Numbered from the stretch's first letter, positions 6,124 to 17,244 are shown. The stretch: 64,000 nucleotides of DNA from Cyanophora paradoxa CCMP329 (GCA_004431415.1 QPMI01000626.1:124001-188000); one strand, 5' to 3'. Program-made: numbers and translations. The notes: a model not told the origin generated them from the sequence alone.

Positions 6124-7233
6124 TTTTTTTTTTTTGAGTTTTCCGTAGTTTATTAGGGGACAGAGCCCCTGGTACACAAAAAACATCGTTTTCTGTCTAC
6201 CCTAGGCCTAGGTCTACCCTAGGCCAACTAATATACTTTAGCCTAGTCTACTCCCCACTATTGGGTCTCCGACTAGGCGCCCCAAGGGCTATACCCTATT
6301 GCGAGCCCCGCCCCCTCTACCCTTGAGGCGGCTCTCTCGGAGCCTCCCCCCGCGACGGGCCAGGGCCGGTCACGATGGGGTGGGGTAGAGAGGTGGCAGG
6401 GGGCTGGGGCCGGGAGATTGTTGGGCTGGCAGGCTCAGGGTTTAAAGCCAAGCGGCGAGATCCAAAGATGAGAAGAGAGAGGAGGAGATCTCCGCGGTGG
6501 TACCTCGCGTGTTCCCGTGCAGGACAGAGGAGCGGGCGTGGAAGGCGGTGGAGGTGGCGGTGTCGGTGGAGCGACAGGGAACAGATGGGACAGGTTGCTG
6601 GAGGGGCGAGATGGGGAGGGTGGAGCTGGAGAGCCCGTTTCGAGAAGAGGAAGGGTGGAGGAGGGGAGGTGCGGGGGAGGAGGCTGGGGTGAGGGCCGGG
6701 CCTCTTCGGTGGGGAGGGCGGGCGGCGGCCGGTCTTGTGGGGAGGCCGGTCTTGAGGTTCGGGAAGAGGCTCGGGCACAGCTGATGCGGCTGCGGACGAC
6801 GCTCCATCCCGCCGCTGGGCGTGACCATGAGCAGCAGCAGGGGTGACGGAAGCTGCTGCAGCTGTTCTAGATCTGCGGGGGCGAGGTCCGGGTCCGGAAT
6901 TATTGCCTCGGGCTGCACGGAATCCCGCCGACTCTTGAATTTCTCGAAGGAGGCGCGGGCGTCGCGTCCGCACTGTTGCCGTGCCGTCGGCTTGTGCCAC
7001 TGGTGTGTCAGGCGGGGGCACTTGCGTTGGCGGACTGTCCTTTGGACTCTGGGGCCTAGCTATAGAGGTGTCGCTGACGGCCGACGGGCGCGGGCGGGGT
7101 TGGAAGAAGGTGCGGATGTCTGCTCGCGAGTTCCGGGCCGCAGGCCTTGGGTAGGCTGCGCGCTCAGCGGGGGCCGGTATTGGGGTTCCGGTGCGGGCGT
7201 GACTATTTTGGGCCTGGATGGCCTGCAATGGCT

Positions 7234-8110
7234 TCATCTTGGGGGCGCGGTCTGTCTCGCTGGTTTTGGGGGCGACACTGGAGCGGTACATTTTCCTTTG
7301 CGTTTGTGCTGCGCCAGGGCTTCGGGGGAGGCAGCAGCGTAACCGCACCGGCAGCTGAGGGGGGCATCCCGTGGCAGTTCTCCCGGGGCCAGCGCAGCCA
7401 CCGGTATTGCCCGGGGCTGCTCGGGCTGGGAGGCGGTGCTCGTGGGCGCCTCCGTATCCAAGGCCTGCGAGCCTAGAATCCGAGAAAGAATGAGGCCGCG
7501 CCAGGTGGCGCAGTTAGACACAGTGCCCGTGAAGGAGGGTGTGTAGGCCGTGGGGTCATGTTCCAGAGCACGGACAAGTATTTCGGCGAAGGCACAGACG
7601 AAAATCCCGCAGTTGAAGCGATCGTTTTGGGCCGGGATGGGGAATCGGGTGGCTGAGGGGAGGGGCCAGGTGAGAGCGTCGTCGGCGCCGGTCGAGGAGC
7701 CTAGGGCTGCGCATTCGCGCTCCATGTTGAGCCATTTTAGGAGGGGCAGGAGTTGACGGCGGGCCTCTTCGGGGCCGGGAGATTGTATCCATCGTATAGT
7801 TCAGCACGGCGAGCACGGAGATGGAGGGCTGCAAGGATCCAGTGGCCCGGGGTGTGGATAGGGAAGAGTAATAGGTCATAGTCAAAGACATTAATTCCGC
7901 GCCCAGCGGTGCGACGGCGCAGGCGGGCGCTGCCGCCGGCGTTATTGTCTGGGAATAGCGGCGTAGAAAGTGTGCGGGAAAAGTAAGACGCGTCGGCGAG
8001 GGTTAATTTCTCCGCTCGCAAGAAGGTTTAGTCGGGCAAGGTAGTAGTTGATGACGTCGGCGTTCACCCAGGACGAGCCGTTCAGCGTGGCTAGGTCATG
8101 GAGCGATACG
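7234..8110 (-). CDS. Ulp1/SENP-like (peptidase C48) cysteine protease domain of the LINE, followed by a CxC...H...C motif; frameshifted
   Basis: Motifs in order: SLHDLATLNGSSWVNADVINYY (8041-8106), VLLFPHTFY, NVFDYDLLLFPIHTPGHWILAALHLRARRAELYDG, IPAQNDRFNCGIFVCAFAEIL. His, Asp, oxyanion Gln and Cys are all present. Then CRCGYAAASPEALAQHKRKGKC. Confidence 0.9.
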
Positions 8111-8313
8111 GAGGCACTGCCAAACAGTGCAGCGGGGCCGCTGCGGGCTGCCGGGAGCTCTCGGACTGCGCTGTTGGGTAGAGCGCGGGTAGGGGAGCGG
8201 CGTACTTGGGCCCAGGCGGCACGTAATGCAGGTGGGGACGGCGGAGCCGGCCACCCTGCATTACTGGCATTAATATTGGTGATGCTGTTAGCAGCTGCCG
8301 GCCTAGCTACAGT

Positions 8314-10968
8314 CTAGGTCTCGGGCTCGAGCTCGGGGCGGCGGTAGGGGCACCGGCGTTGCGGGTATCGCTGTTGTAGGGGGGCCGTGGCCGGCCACGG
8401 TGCTGGGGAGCAGCGCGGGTTCGAGAGCGGCGCGACTGGCTGACTAATTGTAGGTCTGATGAGAGGGTGAGCTGGCCGTTGGGTATCCGTCGACGCGGGG
8501 CCGGGCCACCACGGTCGAGGGGCTCGTGGGCTCATCCTAATCCTGGCTGGCATCGACCTCGCCGGTGAGGGCTCAGCAGGGCGCGAGGGTCGAGGTGCAT
8601 GAGTTTGGCGGCGAGTAATCCCGTGTCGGCGTTGCCAGGACTGGACTTCGCTATTGCGAGCCTTCCAGATTGCTTGGGTGTAGTCTATGATGGTGGCCAT
8701 AATTGCGTTGGCGCATTTAAGCGCCGCCGGTCTACGTACATCTAAGTAAATCAGGGCAGGGATGAGGCTACGAGGAAGGAGGAGCCTGACGGTGTGGCGG
8801 GGAGAATCGCAGGCAAGGTCGGCGAAGAGTTTGCTGCCGAGGCTTTGCCACTGATCGGGCAGGCCATAGAGTGGCTGCGTGAGGTGCGAAGGAAGGGGGC
8901 CCGGCCGTTGGCGCTGACGCTCTGACCATCCCAGTTTGCATCGTCAGCCAGTGCAAAGGCCGGGAACAGTTGGCGCAGCAACAGTCCGTCCTGGCGCAGG
9001 GCCGGGGGCAGCTTGTAGGCTGGGTCGCCAGCTGCAGCCGCATCGACTGCAGTTTTTAGGCGTTGAGACGATATGGTTTCGTACAATAGGTTGAATATCT
9101 TAGTTTGGGCTTCGATACGGAGGTGCGTGTTGCTGGGCAGAGACCAAAGGCGTGGTCGTGGGTTTCAGGCGTCCCGCTAACGATAGGGGGGGCCGCGGTG
9201 CCTGGCGTGCGTCTCGTGCGGCGGGTCGCCGTTGGGGCCGTTCCGGATCCCACCGTCTTCCTCGGGTCGGACGCAGGCGGCTGCCATGGCGGGGCTGGGG
9301 TGGGCCGGCCGTCTGGGCCTAGCACGGACGCGCAGCCTGCGCGAACACAGAGTCCATTTGGATTTATTGCACTATAGAGATGGGGAGCGTCCCGGGCACG
9401 TTCACCCATGAGGGGTGCGAGTCCGGAGCTGAATTTCGTGATTTGAGCAAGCCTCGCATTCAGGGGGTGCGATGCATCGCGGGAGAGCCCTTTCTTGCGG
9501 TATTCGCGGGCGAGGCGCGCACGGTCGACCGGACTGCCCAAATGGCATTTTTCGGTTGCAAGGAGACGGGAGAAGTTCCGAAATTCGCACGTATTTTTTA
9601 CGTGTGCTCGCGGGTCAGACTCAACTCTGTAAACTCTACGAGTGTCGTAGTTCTCGTTCCAGCAGCGCGGGGGCGAAAAGAGTAGGACCATGTCAAATCC
9701 GCCAGGGGGAAAGACCGGCTCCCGGCGGGCGTGCCACGCGCGTTTTGATGCAACTGTTGCGGCCGGGGACGGGTCTTCGGGGTCAGATTGCCAGGCTGCT
9801 TCCTCAGGGTCAGCCCAGGAAGAAAGTTCCCGGCCGTCGAGTGCCTGCCGGGAGAGGTCTGCGCTGGGGTGCAGAGCCAGTGCCGCAGCGGCGAGGCGGT
9901 CGGCTCGTGCGTTGTCCCGATCAAATGCACGGTTTGGAACCCGTTCTTCTTCCACCAGCAGGGGCAGGCTTGGTAGTCCTGGTGTATGCTGACCTAGCGC
10001 AGCCCGGGCTTCGCGCCGCCTCTGTCGTTCTGCTCGCCTGGAGGCACGAGACGCTTGCTGCATTTGGTGGACGGCTCGGCGGGCGTTCCGACGGTGGATG
10101 TGGGCAGTGCCCGCGCGAAGGTGCTCGGAGATATAGTTGTAGGCGCCGGTTAGCGGGTTCGCGCGCCCTTCGTATACTCCCGTGCCGGGGCCATATTGAG
10201 CTATCAGTTCCGCCTCCGTAGGTTCGGGAGCGACCGGGTCTCGGTCAGAGAGGTAGGATTCGTATGAGTCTGCGTCTGATTCCGAGTCGTGGTCGGCCAC
10301 TTCAGCGGGGGCGGCAGCCGGGCGCGGGCGGCGCCGAGTTATATATTCTTTCTGGTGGGCTTTGACTTTGACAAGACGTTCTTCGTATAGCATTCTGTCG
10401 GGTGCCACGGCCCTTGCTAGTGCAAGCCGGATGCACTGCACCTCAGCATACGCTTTAAGGTGATGGGAGTACGAGGCTCGAATGCAGCTGCGAAGGGTGG
10501 CGGTGGCGCGATGCGAGACGTACTTGGAATAGTCCGCCATTGCAGTGAAGCTGTCAGTTTTCACTGTGCAGCCTTCGGGAGAGAGCAGCAGGGCGGACAG
10601 GACGGCGAGGAGCTCGCCTTTGTTATTGTTCACTGTGCCAGGACACGGGGCCACGAAAAAGTCGCTGCCGTCGGTCGGGATGGCGTCTGCAAGGCCGCGA
10701 AGTTTCGCCACCTGGTCAGTATCGACGCCGGTTGTGCCAGCCGGTCAGCTAGTGCGTGAATTTGTTGACGGAGGGCTATCCCTCGCTGCGTGCGGGCAGC
10801 TTCGTCAGCTAGTGAGGCCGGGTTGCTCTCACGGGGCCAGACGCCAGCGTAGGCCGTGAGTGCAGCTTCTGAGGCGGCGTCCATGGTACTGGCATCCGTG
10901 GCTGCGAGTCGGCGCTCGCGGTCGAGCGGGAGGAGGTTCGGCCGAGCTCCGCGGCAATCAGGTTCCAA
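8314..10968 (-). CDS. LINE ORF2 RNase H domain, CCHC knuckle and C-terminal IWxxRN motif (frameshifted pieces)
   Basis: ATDAS (~10895), NNNKGELLAVLSAL, KTDS, VKVKAH, NARADRLA; then LCVRAGC...ETHDHAFGLCP; then IIDYTQAIWKARN. Confidence 0.85.
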
Positions 10969-12021
10969 AATGGGTCAGCATACTCTGACGATGGGATGCA
11001 GAAGTCGCTCAACTGTCGGCGTTGGGGTAGGCCCGAGGCGCTGTCGGCGGGGGACGGTCCCAGGGTCGCGAGCGGCGACTCCATCTGGCCGCTGGGGCGC
11101 CTCGTGATCATCTGGATCATAATTCCAGTCCTGTTCCCACGGGGGAGGAAATGAGTGTCGCGGAACTCGGGCCACCACGTTATTTTATCTTCAAGGAAAA
11201 TGCGAGCATGCTCGGCGACACGGCCTGACCGCGACTCGGGGACCAGGCTCTGAAGTCGGGCGGGGTAGATGTAGGCTGTGTCTTCGGTCCAGCGGCACCG
11301 TTGGGAGGCCGGGTCTGAGTGGTCACATGCGCGGCGGAGAGCCTCTGCTTCCGGCGTTTTCGCTGTGAAGCGGCTGTCGCATTCTTTGGGATCCATTATG
11401 CAGCGGAAGAAGGAGACGGGTTCGCCGGTGGTGTCATATATGTGGTCCTCTCGGTCGTCCTGGCCTTTGTCTCGGCGGACCCAGTGTTCGAGCTCAACTA
11501 GGACGCGTTCTCTGCCGTCGTCAGCGTCAGTTGTCCGCCGGATATTGCAGATGCGTCCTAGATACGCTTCCGTTGTCCAAACGAAGCCGCCGACTTTGTA
11601 CTGGGGCGAGAGCAGGCCGGCTTCAAGAAGGGTACGTTGGGCTGCAGCCGGATTTTGCGCAGGCTGCAGGTGCATGGGGAAGCGGAGACGACGGGGGATG
11701 GCGCGCGGGCCGACGGGCTGACATATTGCTCGGGTGAACGACGGGAACCAGGAGGGAGGTCTATTGAGTCGCTGTTTAATTTTCCCGCTGCCCCATAAGC
11801 TAATCCAGTCGAGCACACTGACGCCGTCGGGCCCCGTGACGTCAGCAGCTGTGAGGATATCGTGGCGCCAAAGGAATGGTGCAGCCTCACGCAGGAGGCG
11901 CGGGGGGAGCAGTGTTGTGAGCACAAGCGGCGTTCGAGCTGCGGGTGAGGCAGGGCCGGAACGAGATAGTCCTTGCCTGAGTCGAGTTTGTAGCCGGCGC
12001 GGGTCAGATTTCGCGCTACAG

Positions 12022-13620
12022 CTAGTGCAAAATTGTCTCTGTAGGCTGCGGGGCCCAGCTGTAAATTGGGGTAGCAGTATGGCGGAAGGGGAAGCCCCAG
12101 TTGCTCCTGCGCTGCGAAAATGCGGTGCATGATATACGGGAGAAGCAGGGGGTGGTTCGTGCGGATGGTTTCATCGAGCACGTGAATGGCCAGCTGTTCG
12201 TCCTCCGTTCTCTTGAGGCCGTAGAAGCCTCGGCTCCACATGAGCGCGTTGGGCGTGGACCCCTAAGGCGGGCATGATGTTTAGTGAGCGTCATCCAGAG
12301 AGTGTCGAGCTGGGCACATTGTCTCTCGGTAAAGGAAACAATCTTGCAGGCGTAAGTGATGCGAGGGAGAAGGACGCTATTTACTATGTATATCGTCTCT
12401 TTGGCGGTGAGTTTCTTACGCCTTAGTATCGCGCAGGCTGCCCGAGCTGTTGAGTATACAGCCTCAAATTGCCGCCGCCAGTCCAGATTTGCTGTCATCC
12501 AGACCCCGAGCACCTTGAATGGTTTGTTCGGCGCAAGGACTTTGTCGGCCGGTTCTTTAGCATCGGGCGGGCCTAGTAGCGGGGCAGACGGGCGTGGGGA
12601 GACGTTGTTGTACGTAAATTCGGTTTTCTTCGCGTTGAGGGCAATATCATGTATCCAGAAGAATTCAGAGGCCAGGTCTGCGTGCAGCTGGATGCCCCGG
12701 GCTGTACCGCTAATAAGTACGGTGTCGTCTGCGTATGCTTGCCCCGGCGAGGTCACCCGAGGCAGGCGCGCTCGCAGGCGTCGGGTGGGCGCGGGCAGGT
12801 TAGCGTCAGACGCAGAGGGCGGCGGGCCCATGGAGTATTGGGTGCTCTCCGCAGCGCTGACTTCGCGTAAAGCCGATAGAAATACGTCATAGAAGATGAG
12901 CCAGTGAATTGGGGACTCGGTTCCTCCTTGCGGGAGCCCGCACTCCACATCGAAGGGGTCAGTTGGGCCGTACCCTGTCGCGACGGACGCTGTACGTGAT
13001 GTTGATATTTGTCCGTAGAGGCTTATGTACCGTTCGGGAATTTTTAGGCGGCGGAGTGCCATTTCCATGCTAGACCAGCTGACGCTGTCGTAGGCTCTGC
13101 GAATATCTAGCAGTAGCAGATAGATCGGTTTCGAGAATTGTTTTGCGTCCTCCAGTAGCGCGCGCAGCATGTACAGAGGCTCGTCGGTGGACTTGCCTCG
13201 AGTAAAGGCGAAGTTCGCGCCCTGTAATATGTCGTGTTTGCGGAGAACGCGCGAGAGGCGGTCAGTGAGGACTGCCGTCACGAGTTTCAGCGTGCATTCT
13301 TGGAGTGTAATGGGGCGGACATTGTCAGGGTGCCCATCCCATTCCCCGCCCTTGGGATAAGACATATATTTCCGTGAAGAAGGGGCGCAGGGACAGACGA
13401 GAGTTTTAGGATCAGATTTACCGTAGTGAGGATTACCTGGCGGCACGTCGGGAACAGGTTATCGGGTTCTTGGAGCGGCTCCGGGTCCAGGCCCGCCTTG
13501 CGTAGTTCTTCGCAAGTTTTCTTTGAAAGGACCGGTGCCGTCCACAGCATTTTATCATTTCGTGGGAAAATCCCGAGGGCCCCGCCGCACCGTTTCGGAG
13601 AGAGCCGATGATTCGGTCCA
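12022..13620 (-). CDS. LINE ORF2 reverse transcriptase domain
   Basis: GPSGFSHEMIK, ICLIP, RPITLQEC, LLDIRRAYDSVSW, GLPQGGTESPIHWLIFYD, AYADD, LNAKKTE, KVLGVW. Confidence 0.97.
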
Positions 13621-14626
13621 GTTCGGCCTCGCTGGTGGGTTCCATTAGGTACACATAAATTGCATCATCAATATCCTGGCGCGGGGAGTGAAGTCGGCGC
13701 CATATTGAGGCCTCCTGTGCACATGTACTAAGTGGCAGCGCGCCCGGGTCCCTGTTCGCTGTGAGTGGGCTACGCTGCCGTGTCCAGGCATGCATGTGAT
13801 GGCGTGCGAACTGTTTCACTGCATCTTCATTGCCGTATACCTGATATTCTCCAGCGTGGCAGAGGGAGAAGGAGGTAATCGGCCTGCGTTCTGGGGCTTC
13901 AAGTGTTTGGCGGAGGTATTGGGCGAGGTCTGTCTTGAACATGCGCTGCGAGCGCTCTCGGTTTGCTCTGATTGTCGTGGCTTCGAAACGTTTAATGTGG
14001 GCCTGGACTTTGGTGTCCAAGGCCGAGGCCCAAGTGGTGAAGCTTGGAAAATAGTCGAGCCAGCTTGGTTGTCGGGCAGAGAATGGCGGCGGCACAGGGG
14101 TAGTGGGAGTTTAAGATAGCCTGACCGCTTGTCTATTGGGAGTTTGTCAAGCCGGCGGTTGTGATTTGAGATTGCCCTGCGCAGGTCAGAGAGGGAGTGC
14201 CGTACGCGGCGCGGCGTGGAGTCGATCCCGTGGCGCGCCGCTTCCCATGCCTTGCGCAGTTCCTGGGCCCTCGTGAGCAGGTTGGATTCGGGGCGGCCGC
14301 GGCGGGAGAATTTTTGAGGGATTTTTGGGGGCGTAAAGATGCCAAATACTGGCGATTGGCCGAGGTCACAGATGTGGGCGAGAGTGGATTTGAGGGCTTC
14401 GTGCAGGCGGGCTAGGCGGTCCTCTGGCGGGGTGCCGTCGTCGTCCTCCAGCGTTGCGAGTAGCTCTCGTACGCTAGCTGAGGACCCCGGCACCGGCTGC
14501 TGTAGCTTTTCTTCCAGTAGTTCTTTGAAGCGAATTTTTGTGAGCGATGCCTGTGTCGCGTACTTGAAACGCGGGGGCGGGCGAAGACGCTGGGGCCCCA
14601 GTTTATATTTGATGGCCAGGGCCCGT

Positions 14627-15801
14627 TTACTGTACTCTGCAAGGAGTGGGAAATGGTCCGAGGGAAAGGGGCGTTTCTAGGCGACGCTTGGGCCGCTCGA
14701 AGGCGTTAGTCGCGACTTGGGATTGTAAGATGTAGTCGAGCCTGGTAGCATGGCGGAGCGTGCCATCTGGGGCGATGCCTCGAGGGTTGGGGTTGTCAGG
14801 AGCGTCAGGAAATATGAAGGTGATTTGGTCGTCGGTGCCCATGGCTGTGGCAGCGTCGGAGAGGGTCCAGTCGTGAAGCAGTTCATGCCACCAGCGGTGA
14901 TCAGGTTCTCGTGTGGTCGCATATTGCCCTGTCTGATTTTGCCCGTCTCGGGACAGAGGCAGCTGTTAAGATCGCCAAGGAGGAAAAGTGCGCGCGGGGC
15001 GGAGCGCCCAGTCAGCGTACATGGTCGCGCGGAGATAGTCGAAGATTTTCGCACTTTCAGTAGACCGCGCCGTCCGACTTTCGCCGGGGGGAGGTACACG
15101 CTGGCGATAAAGATCTGAACATTATTTGCAAATCGAAGCTCACAGCCGGCCACGCGGCCTGGCATTGTGTAGGTCTTAAAACAGTGCTTGGCCATATTTT
15201 CTGAGAGAAAAAGGGCTACGCCGGAGCCGCGGGGGAGGCTCGATTTTGGCGGAGTTTCTTCTGCGAGAGGGGCGGGTGGGCGGGGCTCGAGCTGGGAGCT
15301 CCTGAGCACTAGTTGTGCGCGTGGCCGAGTCGGCGTGCACGGACGTGAGCATGAGCCCCGATGTCACTGACCTGCGCATCGCTCTGACCGTAGCCTGGGT
15401 GCAGTTAAGTGATTGGACCCCTAATACGCTCAGCCCCAGTCAAGCATATATTTCTGGATCTGGCCGACATGGTTGACGCTAGAGCAGGTGCGGGCGTTCC
15501 AGGTCGCGAGTCTCCAGTACTGGTCAGAGTCAAAGCGGCGGCGTATGATACCCGATTTTCGGTGAGTGCCCGCAGGTTTGGCTCCGAGGCGCTCGTGTGT
15601 AAACAGCTCGAGGGGAAATAGCGTGCGGAGCAGCGGCGCGGGACGGCCGGCACCAGCGGGGCCAGGCGTGTTATATGCGGTCATGGGACTCTGGGCGGGT
15701 GGAACATTTTCTTGTGCCCCTGGTGCAGGCCAGACTCCAGGCCTGGGTTCTTCGCGGCGGTGCGCGGGGGCGGGCCGGATAGCGCTGTCGTTGGATGCCA
15801 T
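14627..15801 (-). CDS. LINE ORF2 N-terminus with APE-type endonuclease (probable start MASND at 15801; frameshifted)
   Basis: LATWNARTC, GSGVALFL, IASVYLPP, LLGDLNS, TRLDYIL and SDHFP occur in canonical order. Confidence 0.92.
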
Positions 15802-16962
15802 GATGCCGGGCTCGCGCGTGATGCATGGGCCAGCATGGCCGGGTCAGCTTGGCCCGCCGCGGCGAGGGCCGAGCCCGCTGCCGCTGCCTGGCGGCGCCAC
15901 CCCGCATTCGCATGTGAGCCTCTAGCGCTGTGGTCATGGCAGCTATCGGGCCCGATTGACTGGTTGCTCCCGATTGGCGGGTGCACAATGAATGGCGACG
16001 ACGACGTAGTGCCGGCGCTAGCGGCCGGTCCGGGAGGGCAGAAAAAATTCTTTTTCTGTTCATGCATATGTCTTGGGGCCGGGGACTCGGACGGTTCGCC
16101 GGAGCCAGTGATCGAGCTCGCGGTAGGCGTCGCGGAGATTCGAATTCGGGTCGGGATCCAGCTGCAGCGCCGGCCGCGGCGTGCACCGCCGTGCAGTCTA
16201 CAGTGCAGACCGTACACGTGCGGGCCACTGACAGTGAGGCTACGTATGCTATGCTGGCGGTAGCGCCGGCGGCGCACATACACAGTGTCATACTGGTACT
16301 AGTAATTGTAGTGGCGGTGGCGCTAGCTGTTGTGATTGCCTTGGCGTACCCATCTTTGGCAGCCCTAGCTCTAGATCGGGATCTGGGGCCTGCTAGGTCG
16401 TGATCGGGGGGGCTGTTACTACTCAAGTTAAAGGTGGCGCCGGCGCCGGTGCGCGTGCCGGCGCCAGCTGTTTCGGTATCATATGCATTAGTGCTAGTGC
16501 AAGGCATTATAACTACTCGGAGCCGCGTATACGTATACGTACGTGCCGACGGCGCCGTCAGGTCGAGGCCGGCATCGGCACCGGTACCGGCGTCGGCGTC
16601 GGTCCTCTGGCATCTTTGATCATGACAGGCTAGCCGGCGCCGGCGCCGTAGTACTAGTAGCTTCTGAGGTACAGGTCTGTAGCGGGGGCCGGCTTCGGCA
16701 CCGGCCTCGGGCTCCTGGCTTCGCTTAGGGACTAGCTGTCGTGTTACGTATACAGCAGGATCCGCGGCCTGCTGGGGCCGAGTCCGGGAGGCAGCGGTCG
16801 GTGTCGTAAGAACAGGCTGGCGCTTCAGGCCGGTGGTGCAGTCATGATTAGACTGTTCTCCTAGCGTGGCTGTCGAGCGTGCGCGAGCCCGGGCTAGCCG
16901 GATCCGCACAGTTGATGGGTACGTTTTCCACCCACGTACCCCTCTGGGCCTCGCGTGCAAGT
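15671..16962 (-). CDS. 3' part of the hypothetical ORF interrupted by the LTR element
   Basis: Removing the LTR element and one CAAGT copy joins ...RSRPDHDL (29520) in frame to HARPRG... (16957), which stays open to 15671. Sequence is low-complexity Ala/Thr/Arg. Confidence 0.45.
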
Positions 16963-17244
16963 TGTCGGATGAGAGGATTCCCACCCGATTAGGCACCCGC
17001 GCAGTACTGCGCGGGGCCGGCTCCCTGTGCTGGAGCAGCTGTAGATGCAGGCTGGTGTATTCACTGTGTACCCGGAAGACTACTGACTCTGTACCCCTAA
17101 GACAGGTAGAGGCAGGCCAGCGTAGGCTACCGAGAGGTAAGCCTACAGGAAGAGAGACTATGCCAGGGCTCTCAGACTATGTCAGGCACCAACTAGCTCT
17201 AGTCACTAAGTCACCGCAAGGCCTGGGAATCGAGCCAGGCGACA
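16963..17244 (-). repeat. 3' LTR (282 bp)
   Basis: Identical by eye to 29238-29519. Contains the 20-bp perfect palindrome CCCGCGCAGTACTGCGCGGG (16996-17015). Confidence 0.95.

Follow-up and report, generated by a model that had tools for sequence, protein, structure and literature searches.

A Ulp1/SENP-type (C48) protease domain downstream of the pol frame of an APE-type LINE in the glaucophyte Cyanophora paradoxa

Protease-bearing transposons and the Cyanophora element

The closest described counterparts of the element reported here are long interspersed nuclear elements (LINEs) that carry a cysteine protease of the type removing ubiquitin-like modifiers (UBLs). The element lies on the minus strand of a 64,000-nucleotide (nt) stretch of the genome of Cyanophora paradoxa CCMP329 (QPMI01000626.1:124001-188000; hereafter the window, in whose coordinates all positions are given) and extends from approximately 15801 to a tail of 12 A at 6135-6124. 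One comparison is with the Dualen/RandI elements of Chlamydomonas, which were reportedly described by Kojima and Fujiwara in 2005. Dualen/RandI resembles the Cyanophora element in combining an apurinic/apyrimidinic endonuclease (APE), a reverse transcriptase (RT), an RNase H and a CCHC zinc motif with a UBL-removing type of cysteine protease, for which a role in disturbing host protein control was proposed (PMC8557442, PMC9977147, PMC4640811). The Dualen protease is described as Josephin-like (PMC8557442, PMC9977147) and is accompanied by a second, restriction-like endonuclease (RLE), whereas in the Cyanophora element the protease belongs to family C48, no RLE was detected and a block of stop codons stands between pol and the protease. 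Identity with Dualen/RandI was the first reading and would have made the finding a known one; it was rejected on the type of protease and on the missing RLE signature, the latter judged at the level of sequence only.

A second counterpart is the cryptophyte Dualen-1_GCr (Lescot et al. 2016), in which SET and C48 domains are located N-terminal to the APE in one protein of 5,287 residues that also contains an RLE (PMC5029228). Like the Cyanophora element it is a LINE in which C48 is combined with APE, RT, RNase H and CCHC (PMC5029228), but the domain is N-terminal there and accompanied by the RLE, whereas in Cyanophora it is found 3' of a normal pol end. The non-LTR elements NeSL-1 and Utopia-1_TSP, which are RLE-type, site-specific and of nematodes, also encode an N-terminal Ulp1-like protease (PMC4640811), in contrast to the N-terminal APE and the C48 domain 3' of pol in the present element. 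Domains of the C48/Ulp1 type are further known from DNA transposons, namely Ginger1 (C-terminal to the transposase), Mutator-like elements (KI-MULE) and CryptonF/S (a separate protein in some Cryptons) (PMC2836005, PMC3212892); these differ from the Cyanophora element in being class II, with a different transposition chemistry. For these DNA transposons a link to SUMO and ubiquitin pathways has been proposed (PMC2836005, PMC3212892), and roles in transposition have been suggested for transposon-borne Ulp1/C48 domains (PMC2836005, PMC3212892, PMC4640811, PMC5029228).

Full-text literature searches, with Repbase and Dfam outside their scope, found no paper on a C48 domain after the pol open reading frame (ORF) of a LINE with APE and RNase H. 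A preliminary description of this stretch, made from the sequence alone, had stated that no C-terminal Ulp1 domain on such a LINE was known to its author. That statement agrees with the literature searched, but a C48 domain on an APE LINE has been published (PMC5029228), as has the Josephin-like protease of Dualen (PMC8557442, PMC9977147). The novelty is less than the preliminary description implied because C48 on APE-encoding LINEs is on record for cryptophyte Dualen (PMC5029228). What is new here is the placement of C48 behind the pol frame of a glaucophyte LINE with APE and RNase H; transposon-borne C48 itself is known.

The protease module beyond the end of ORF2

The 3' part of the element contains the following features:

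8317..9136, minus strand: C-terminal ORF2 segment with the conserved VRLLLPRSLIPAL and IWKARNSEVQSWQRRHGIT, followed by a Pro-rich end
8303..8316, minus strand: stop block TAGACTGTAGCTAG, 14 nt, with TAG in three frames (8316-8314, 8309-8307 and 8305-8303)
8259..8270, minus strand: two in-phase ATG codons (8270-8268 and 8261-8259), 33-44 nt past the stop block, candidate start of a separate protease ORF
7500..8130, minus strand: Peptidase_C48 (Ulp1/SENP-type, clan CE) catalytic domain, from Pfam PF02902, SENP alignments and the ESM Atlas
7288..7353, minus strand: Cys/His motif CRCGYAAASPEALAQHKRKGKC, 3' of the protease, from translation; no Pfam family
6438..7287, minus strand: Pro-rich tail of the protease ORF, with a CPIC... 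motif and then the conserved peptide HRGDLLLSLLIFGISPLGFKP; stop at 6437-6435; from corrected translation

The preliminary description had proposed a LINE with a complete C48 motif set between the end of ORF2 and the poly(A), and this was borne out. The piece containing the His and Asp boxes (8021-7740) scored 27.1 bits against PF02902, above the curated cut-off of 20.7 and thus within the family, and the piece containing the Gln and Cys boxes (7725-7237) scored 18.6 bits, alone below the same cut-off, as assembly frameshifts break up the domain. The catalytic set occurs in canonical order, with His at 7844-7842 (GHW), Asp at 7793-7791 (LYDG), the oxyanion Gln at 7629-7627 (AQND) and Cys at 7611-7609 (NCGIF). 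The His/Asp piece aligned to SENP2, SENP1 and Ulp1-like chains over the catalytic His and Asp, with an E value of 7e-6 for SENP2, and the N-terminal piece 'DLATLNGSSWVNADVINYY' aligned weakly to SENP5 and SENP2. In the ESM Atlas the Cys-box piece matched C48 clusters at 0.95, C48 accounting for 27 of 30 matches. A sequence search of the PDB with the Cys-box piece returned nothing useful, and a word-indexed protein search with it gave no match, a result of little weight in view of the length limits of the tool. The small Cys/His motif (7353-7288) and the Pro-rich tail, both also noted earlier, were found as listed above.

The sequence IWKARN, located at 8670-8653 within IWKARNSEVQSWQRRHGIT, had been taken to mark the usual end of ORF2. 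In agreement, the motif IW..R(C/N)....WE...GIT...K was found 40-130 residues from the C-terminus in 13 RT relatives (jackhmmer and alignment A1; library of 1.84 billion proteins). Since the pol reading frame stops approximately 115 codons past the IWKARN motif and the relatives end 40-130 residues past it, ORF2 is of normal extent. The stretch between the CCHC and IW..R motifs varied in length and sequence among the 13 relatives, the only near-invariant residues being W, R, E, I, T and P of the IW..R..WE..IT region. A conserved D...(D/E)xK signature of a restriction-like endonuclease was absent between the CCHC motif and the ORF end of the element and the 13 relatives in a test made at the level of sequence only, and a PDB sequence search with the post-CCHC pieces gave no match.

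The 14-nt stop block was reproduced with 0 substitutions in a short-read contig covering 7822-9151. With stops in all three frames, translation of pol must halt there whatever the exact frame. As annotated, the protease is not a plain fusion to ORF2; it either extends ORF2 by read-through or has an ORF of its own farther downstream. The earlier statement that the N-terminal part of the protease is in frame with ORF2 apart from one TAG at 8314 was right as to that codon (8316-8314), but the block has TAG in all three frames and the raw frames proved unreliable; a simple fusion of Ulp1 to ORF2 is contradicted by the intervening block.

In order to assess the reading frames, positions 6124-12000 were compared with Logan contigs of two independent DNA runs (2019 and 2024); the corrected sequence was used for reading frames only and all searches were performed on unaltered references. 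The exact-match contigs showed 0 substitutions but had additional single bases, G or C, within homopolymers, with 10 single-base insertions in 7822-9151, 5 in 6952-7851 and 5 in 10499-11397. Among those listed are insertions after 6345, 6411, 6461, 6667, 6719, 6738, 7932, 7950, 8404, 8929, 9121 and 11023. With the insertions at 9121, 8929 and 8404 applied, a single frame of 814 codons (10744-8306) is open through RNase H, CCHC and the IWKARN segment, and application of the listed insertions joined the first two protease pieces (8313-7740). The frameshifts of the window are mostly assembly errors and, since the window is a long-read assembly with deletion errors, lacking single G/C bases relative to the short reads, this copy of the element is probably not decayed. 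Apparent frameshifts in G/C runs of this genome's assembly may be sequencing errors and 'decayed' elements may be intact.

Past the stop block a second coding stretch of approximately 620 codons extends from 8313 or 8270 to 6438 on the same strand as pol and encodes a low-complexity linker, the C48 domain, the Cys/His motif, the Pro-rich region and, at its very end, a conserved peptide. A protease frame in phase with ORF2 across a single TAG (read-through) and one starting at the downstream ATG are both compatible with the counts of insertions.

That the module belongs to the LINE follows from bridging contigs, the order in a paralogue, a sister family, codon-position composition and strand skew, and repeat-like contig ends. 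One short-read contig spans 9151-7822, including IWKARN, the stop block and the N-terminus of the protease, with 0 substitutions, and a second continues to 6952. An approximately 85% identical paralogue, recovered in short-read contigs, aligned on both sides of the junction, at 9671-8595 (IWKARN side) and at 8253-8123 (C48 side), with 419 unalignable letters in place of the 341 present here (8254-8594, the region of the stop block). Because the paralogue linker is unalignable, the pol-protease junction is, on this alignment, the fastest-changing part. The bridging contig, the paralogue and the sister family keep the same order, contrary to the one-off 3' transduction that the preliminary description had named as the case against its proposal.

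The sister family is represented by eight Cyanophora gene models named from five contigs (tig00020965, tig00021111, tig00000411, tig00001472 and tig00020553). The best of them, P0176, aligned across 95% of the RNase H-CCHC ORF at 51% identity, and the other models were 57-88% identical over shorter stretches. The C48 His box 'FDFDVLLFPIHSPGHW' was present in six of the eight (P0176-P0181, from four contigs). Three of these (P0176, P0177 and P0179) contain RNase H, CCHC, IWQARN, a linker with the N-terminal motif 'INVTRRSLSRLNG' and the His box; P0178, P0180 and P0181 are without the IWQARN stretch. A tblastn alignment of P0176 reached its own C-terminus, ...HRGDLIQSLLIFGLSPLGYRP, at the end of the protease ORF, where it matched ...HRGDLLLSLLIFGISPLGFKP with an E value of 1.6e-11.

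The G+C content at third codon positions (GC3) was 0.60-0.68 for the protease pieces and 0.61-0.64 for RT and RNase H, and a sense-strand excess of C over G was uniform from approximately 6500 to 16900, the protease region included. Two short-read contigs exit just past the poly(A) with unlike flanks and contigs break at 30-nt overlaps, as repeats do, which are signs of more than one copy of the element. The exact-match contigs exceeded the paralogue approximately 4-9-fold in depth, a hint of several identical copies that is not relied on here, depth being distinct from copy number. The element is probably a young member of an APE-type LINE family of C. paradoxa, and the comparisons above indicate that the C48 module is integral to the element and conserved both there and in the sister family.

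A scan for the C48 Cys box was performed on 183 proteins, including the top 150 RT relatives, and the box was found in one, P0017. This protein is a 3,720-residue ORF on an 11.9-kb metagenome contig from ENA and is the closest full-length RT relative, with 43% identity in RT. Like the Cyanophora element, P0017 has APE, RT, RNase H, CCHC, the IW..R motif, a long Pro-rich tail that closes with a Cys/His motif, and a C48-like domain; unlike the element, it carries that domain in the same ORF upstream of CCHC, inside an RNase H insert of approximately 1,150 residues. The C48-like domain (PGHW...IIIYDG...QQQRNTCG) has His, Asp, Gln and Cys in order at approximately 2490-2720. The match is weak, with 17.1 bits for Pfam and BLASTP values of 2e-4 and 0.004 against the pieces of the element, and a PDB search with the region gave no match. 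The relatives P0018, P0019 and P0023 are plain elements with Exo_endo_phos, RVT_1 and RNase_H. Modules of the C48 type, as assigned here, recur in this RT neighbourhood at differing places, P0017 having one inside RNase H and the Cyanophora element one after pol. Separately, an earlier stretch of the P0017 insert (residues ~1600-2870), 'DYDYILVPF...W', was weakly C48-like and without the His.

Expression, function and alternative explanations

The reading that we prefer, with a probability of roughly 0.6, is that of a young APE-type LINE family in which pol is followed by an integral C48 protease, made from the LINE RNA and deconjugating SUMO or another UBL for the benefit of the element. Ribosomes would either read through the TAG or re-initiate at the ATG located 33-44 nt downstream, yielding a product of approximately 620 residues besides pol. 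Its C48 domain would act on proteins of the host or of the element and free them of SUMO or a related modifier. Such deconjugation would favour retrotransposition, for example by reversing repression that depends on SUMO or by targeting repair factors where the element inserts. A benefit from deSUMOylation is the standard reading for transposon-borne Ulp1 domains, and the anti-silencing role that the preliminary description proposed would be plausible here. To our knowledge, proteases for ubiquitin-like modifiers recur on unrelated transposons (Mutator, Ginger, Crypton, NeSL and Dualen), and we know of no demonstration of their use to an element. With a family that is probably young, a complete set of catalytic residues, a sister family and a differently built relative, the Cyanophora element offers a tractable case for deSUMOylation versus host control. 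The stop block further poses the testable question of how a cistron behind pol could be expressed from a LINE RNA.

Several observations weigh against this reading. The stop block bars synthesis of the protease by plain translation of ORF2, and no known read-through signal was recognised at the block. In the raw letters the phase of the ATG codons at 8270 and 8261 differs by one base from that of the C48 frame, such that a separate ORF starting there would require one base correction between 8268 and approximately 8180; three of the short-read insertions in 7822-8380 and two in 8381-9151 are without exact positions, and the protease may start in either manner. The gene models of the sister family rest on an error-prone assembly and are full of invented introns, and fusion and separate ORF are therefore indistinguishable there. 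Contigs of RNA-labelled runs gave only short partial overlaps of low complexity and no convincing transcript; partial and low-complexity as they are, they provide no evidence of transcription either way. The 'QE' site of the APE, which contains a catalytic Glu, reads 'QS' in the raw letters at approximately 15412-15410 (VQSL, compared with VQEL or LQEL in relatives). This position lies outside the short-read contig coverage, and QS may be a real inactivating change, in which case the copy may be dead, or another assembly error. Searches by blastn and tblastn for further copies within the window found none, and no convincing target-site duplication was found between the 3' flank and 15300-16800, the 5' end being undefined.

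A wider proposal, which we regard as tentative and on balance doubtful, is that glaucophyte LINEs have made a SUMO/UBL protease a regular element gene. The protease would be a separate 'third' product or the result of programmed read-through and would act as a counter-defence, removing SUMO-type marks either from proteins of the element itself or from host factors of silencing or repair. If so, the varying position of the C48 domain, after pol in the Cyanophora element and inside RNase H in P0017, could reflect more than one acquisition.

It is unlikely that the protease is a passenger, that is, a host SENP-like gene gained by an ancestral 3' transduction and of no service to the element, or an untranslated relic. 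Such an origin would fit the three-frame stop block that parts the protease from ORF2, the RNA-labelled runs with their lack of a convincing transcript, and a linker between ORF2 and protease that is the least conserved part and unalignable in the 85% identical paralogue (419 versus 341 letters). Set against these are the four intact catalytic residues and the retention of the module, the His box and the extreme C-terminal peptide in the sister family, where P0176 is diverged to 51% identity over the RNase H-CCHC ORF. Moreover, the protease region is LINE-like in its strand skew and in GC by codon position, and P0017, a LINE of the same RT neighbourhood, bears a C48-like domain elsewhere.

A role in processing, in which a polyprotein made by TAG read-through is cut by the C48 domain or the long pol is cut into working pieces, appears quite improbable. 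Clan CE proteases of some viruses process polyproteins, pol is a very long protein that contains large inserts of low complexity, and ORF2 and the C48 frame would be in phase across a single TAG if the unplaced short-read corrections all fell downstream of the block. On the other hand, we know of no LINE ORF2 protein that requires processing, the RT relatives examined are without any protease, P0017 excepted, and the best sequence matches of the domain are deconjugating enzymes of the SENP type. The normal end of pol and the lack of a protease in most relatives make processing the less likely role, and the idea would lose its rationale if the protease were a separate product.

That the LINE-protease junction is an assembly chimera, or the protease a chance ORF in GC-rich DNA, is scarcely credible even in a window with an assembly that is error-prone at the single-base level, against which stand the reproduction of the junction without substitutions in short-read contigs from the 2019 and 2024 runs, the recognition of C48 by Pfam, PDB and Atlas searches, and the same order in gene models from other contigs.

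Layout of the remainder of the element

The domains APE, RT, RNase H and CCHC follow one another in one pol ORF and the 3' end is a poly(A), the arrangement of an APE-type LINE with RNase H (I-group-like architecture). The remaining features are as follows:

15799..15801, minus strand: ATG opening the long pol frame (MASNDS...), from the ORF list and translation; in frame with the APE N-terminus
14630..15530, minus strand: APE-type endonuclease with motifs WNARTC, GSGVALFL, ASVYLPP, LLGDLNS, RLDYIL and SDHFPLL; frames broken in the raw window
12025..14110, minus strand: reverse transcriptase, with N-terminal region 14110-13436, core 13458-12025 and YADD at 12735-12724
9893..10902, minus strand: RNase H with motifs ATDAS, NKGELLAV, KTDS, VKAHQKEY and DNARADRL; Pfam RNase_H weak (0.0093), relatives 1e-13
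9137..9352, minus strand: CCHC zinc motif (CVRAGC ... ETHDHAFGLC), from translation; motif also in the sister family and relatives
6124..6437, minus strand: 3' untranslated region (UTR; 6437-6136, approximately 300 nt) and poly(A) of 12 A (6135-6124)

The check with family models suggested in the preliminary description recovered Peptidase_C48 and RVT_1, the latter with an E value of 6.4e-22 on 13446-12025, and RNase_H weakly, as listed. Pfam gave no match on the broken APE pieces or on the post-CCHC pieces, and the APE was identified instead by its motifs and by phmmer against the APE regions of RT relatives (2.5e-15 for P0080 and 1.7e-10 for P0101), which themselves carry Pfam Exo_endo_phos. 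A Pfam scan of the large ORFs upstream of 15801 and elsewhere in the window found no families.

A sense-strand skew of C over G and T over A extends approximately 1.1 kb upstream of the ATG at 15801 (15802-16900) and stops near 17000. On this compositional ground the element may start farther 5' than 15801, at up to approximately 16.9 kb, and the segment 15802-16900 may be a 5' UTR or an unrecognised upstream ORF of the element.

The representative library contained 19,169 RT matches. The best protein matches of the element were EukProt EP00741 gene models, and the nearest named matches were only a Rhizophagus 'unnamed protein' and a Metarhizium RT. Two inserts were observed within the conserved domains of pol: in RNase H an acidic/basic insert of approximately 140 residues separates the conserved His from the last Asp (9916-10343), and the CCHC motif is split by approximately 60 low-complexity residues (9164-9331).

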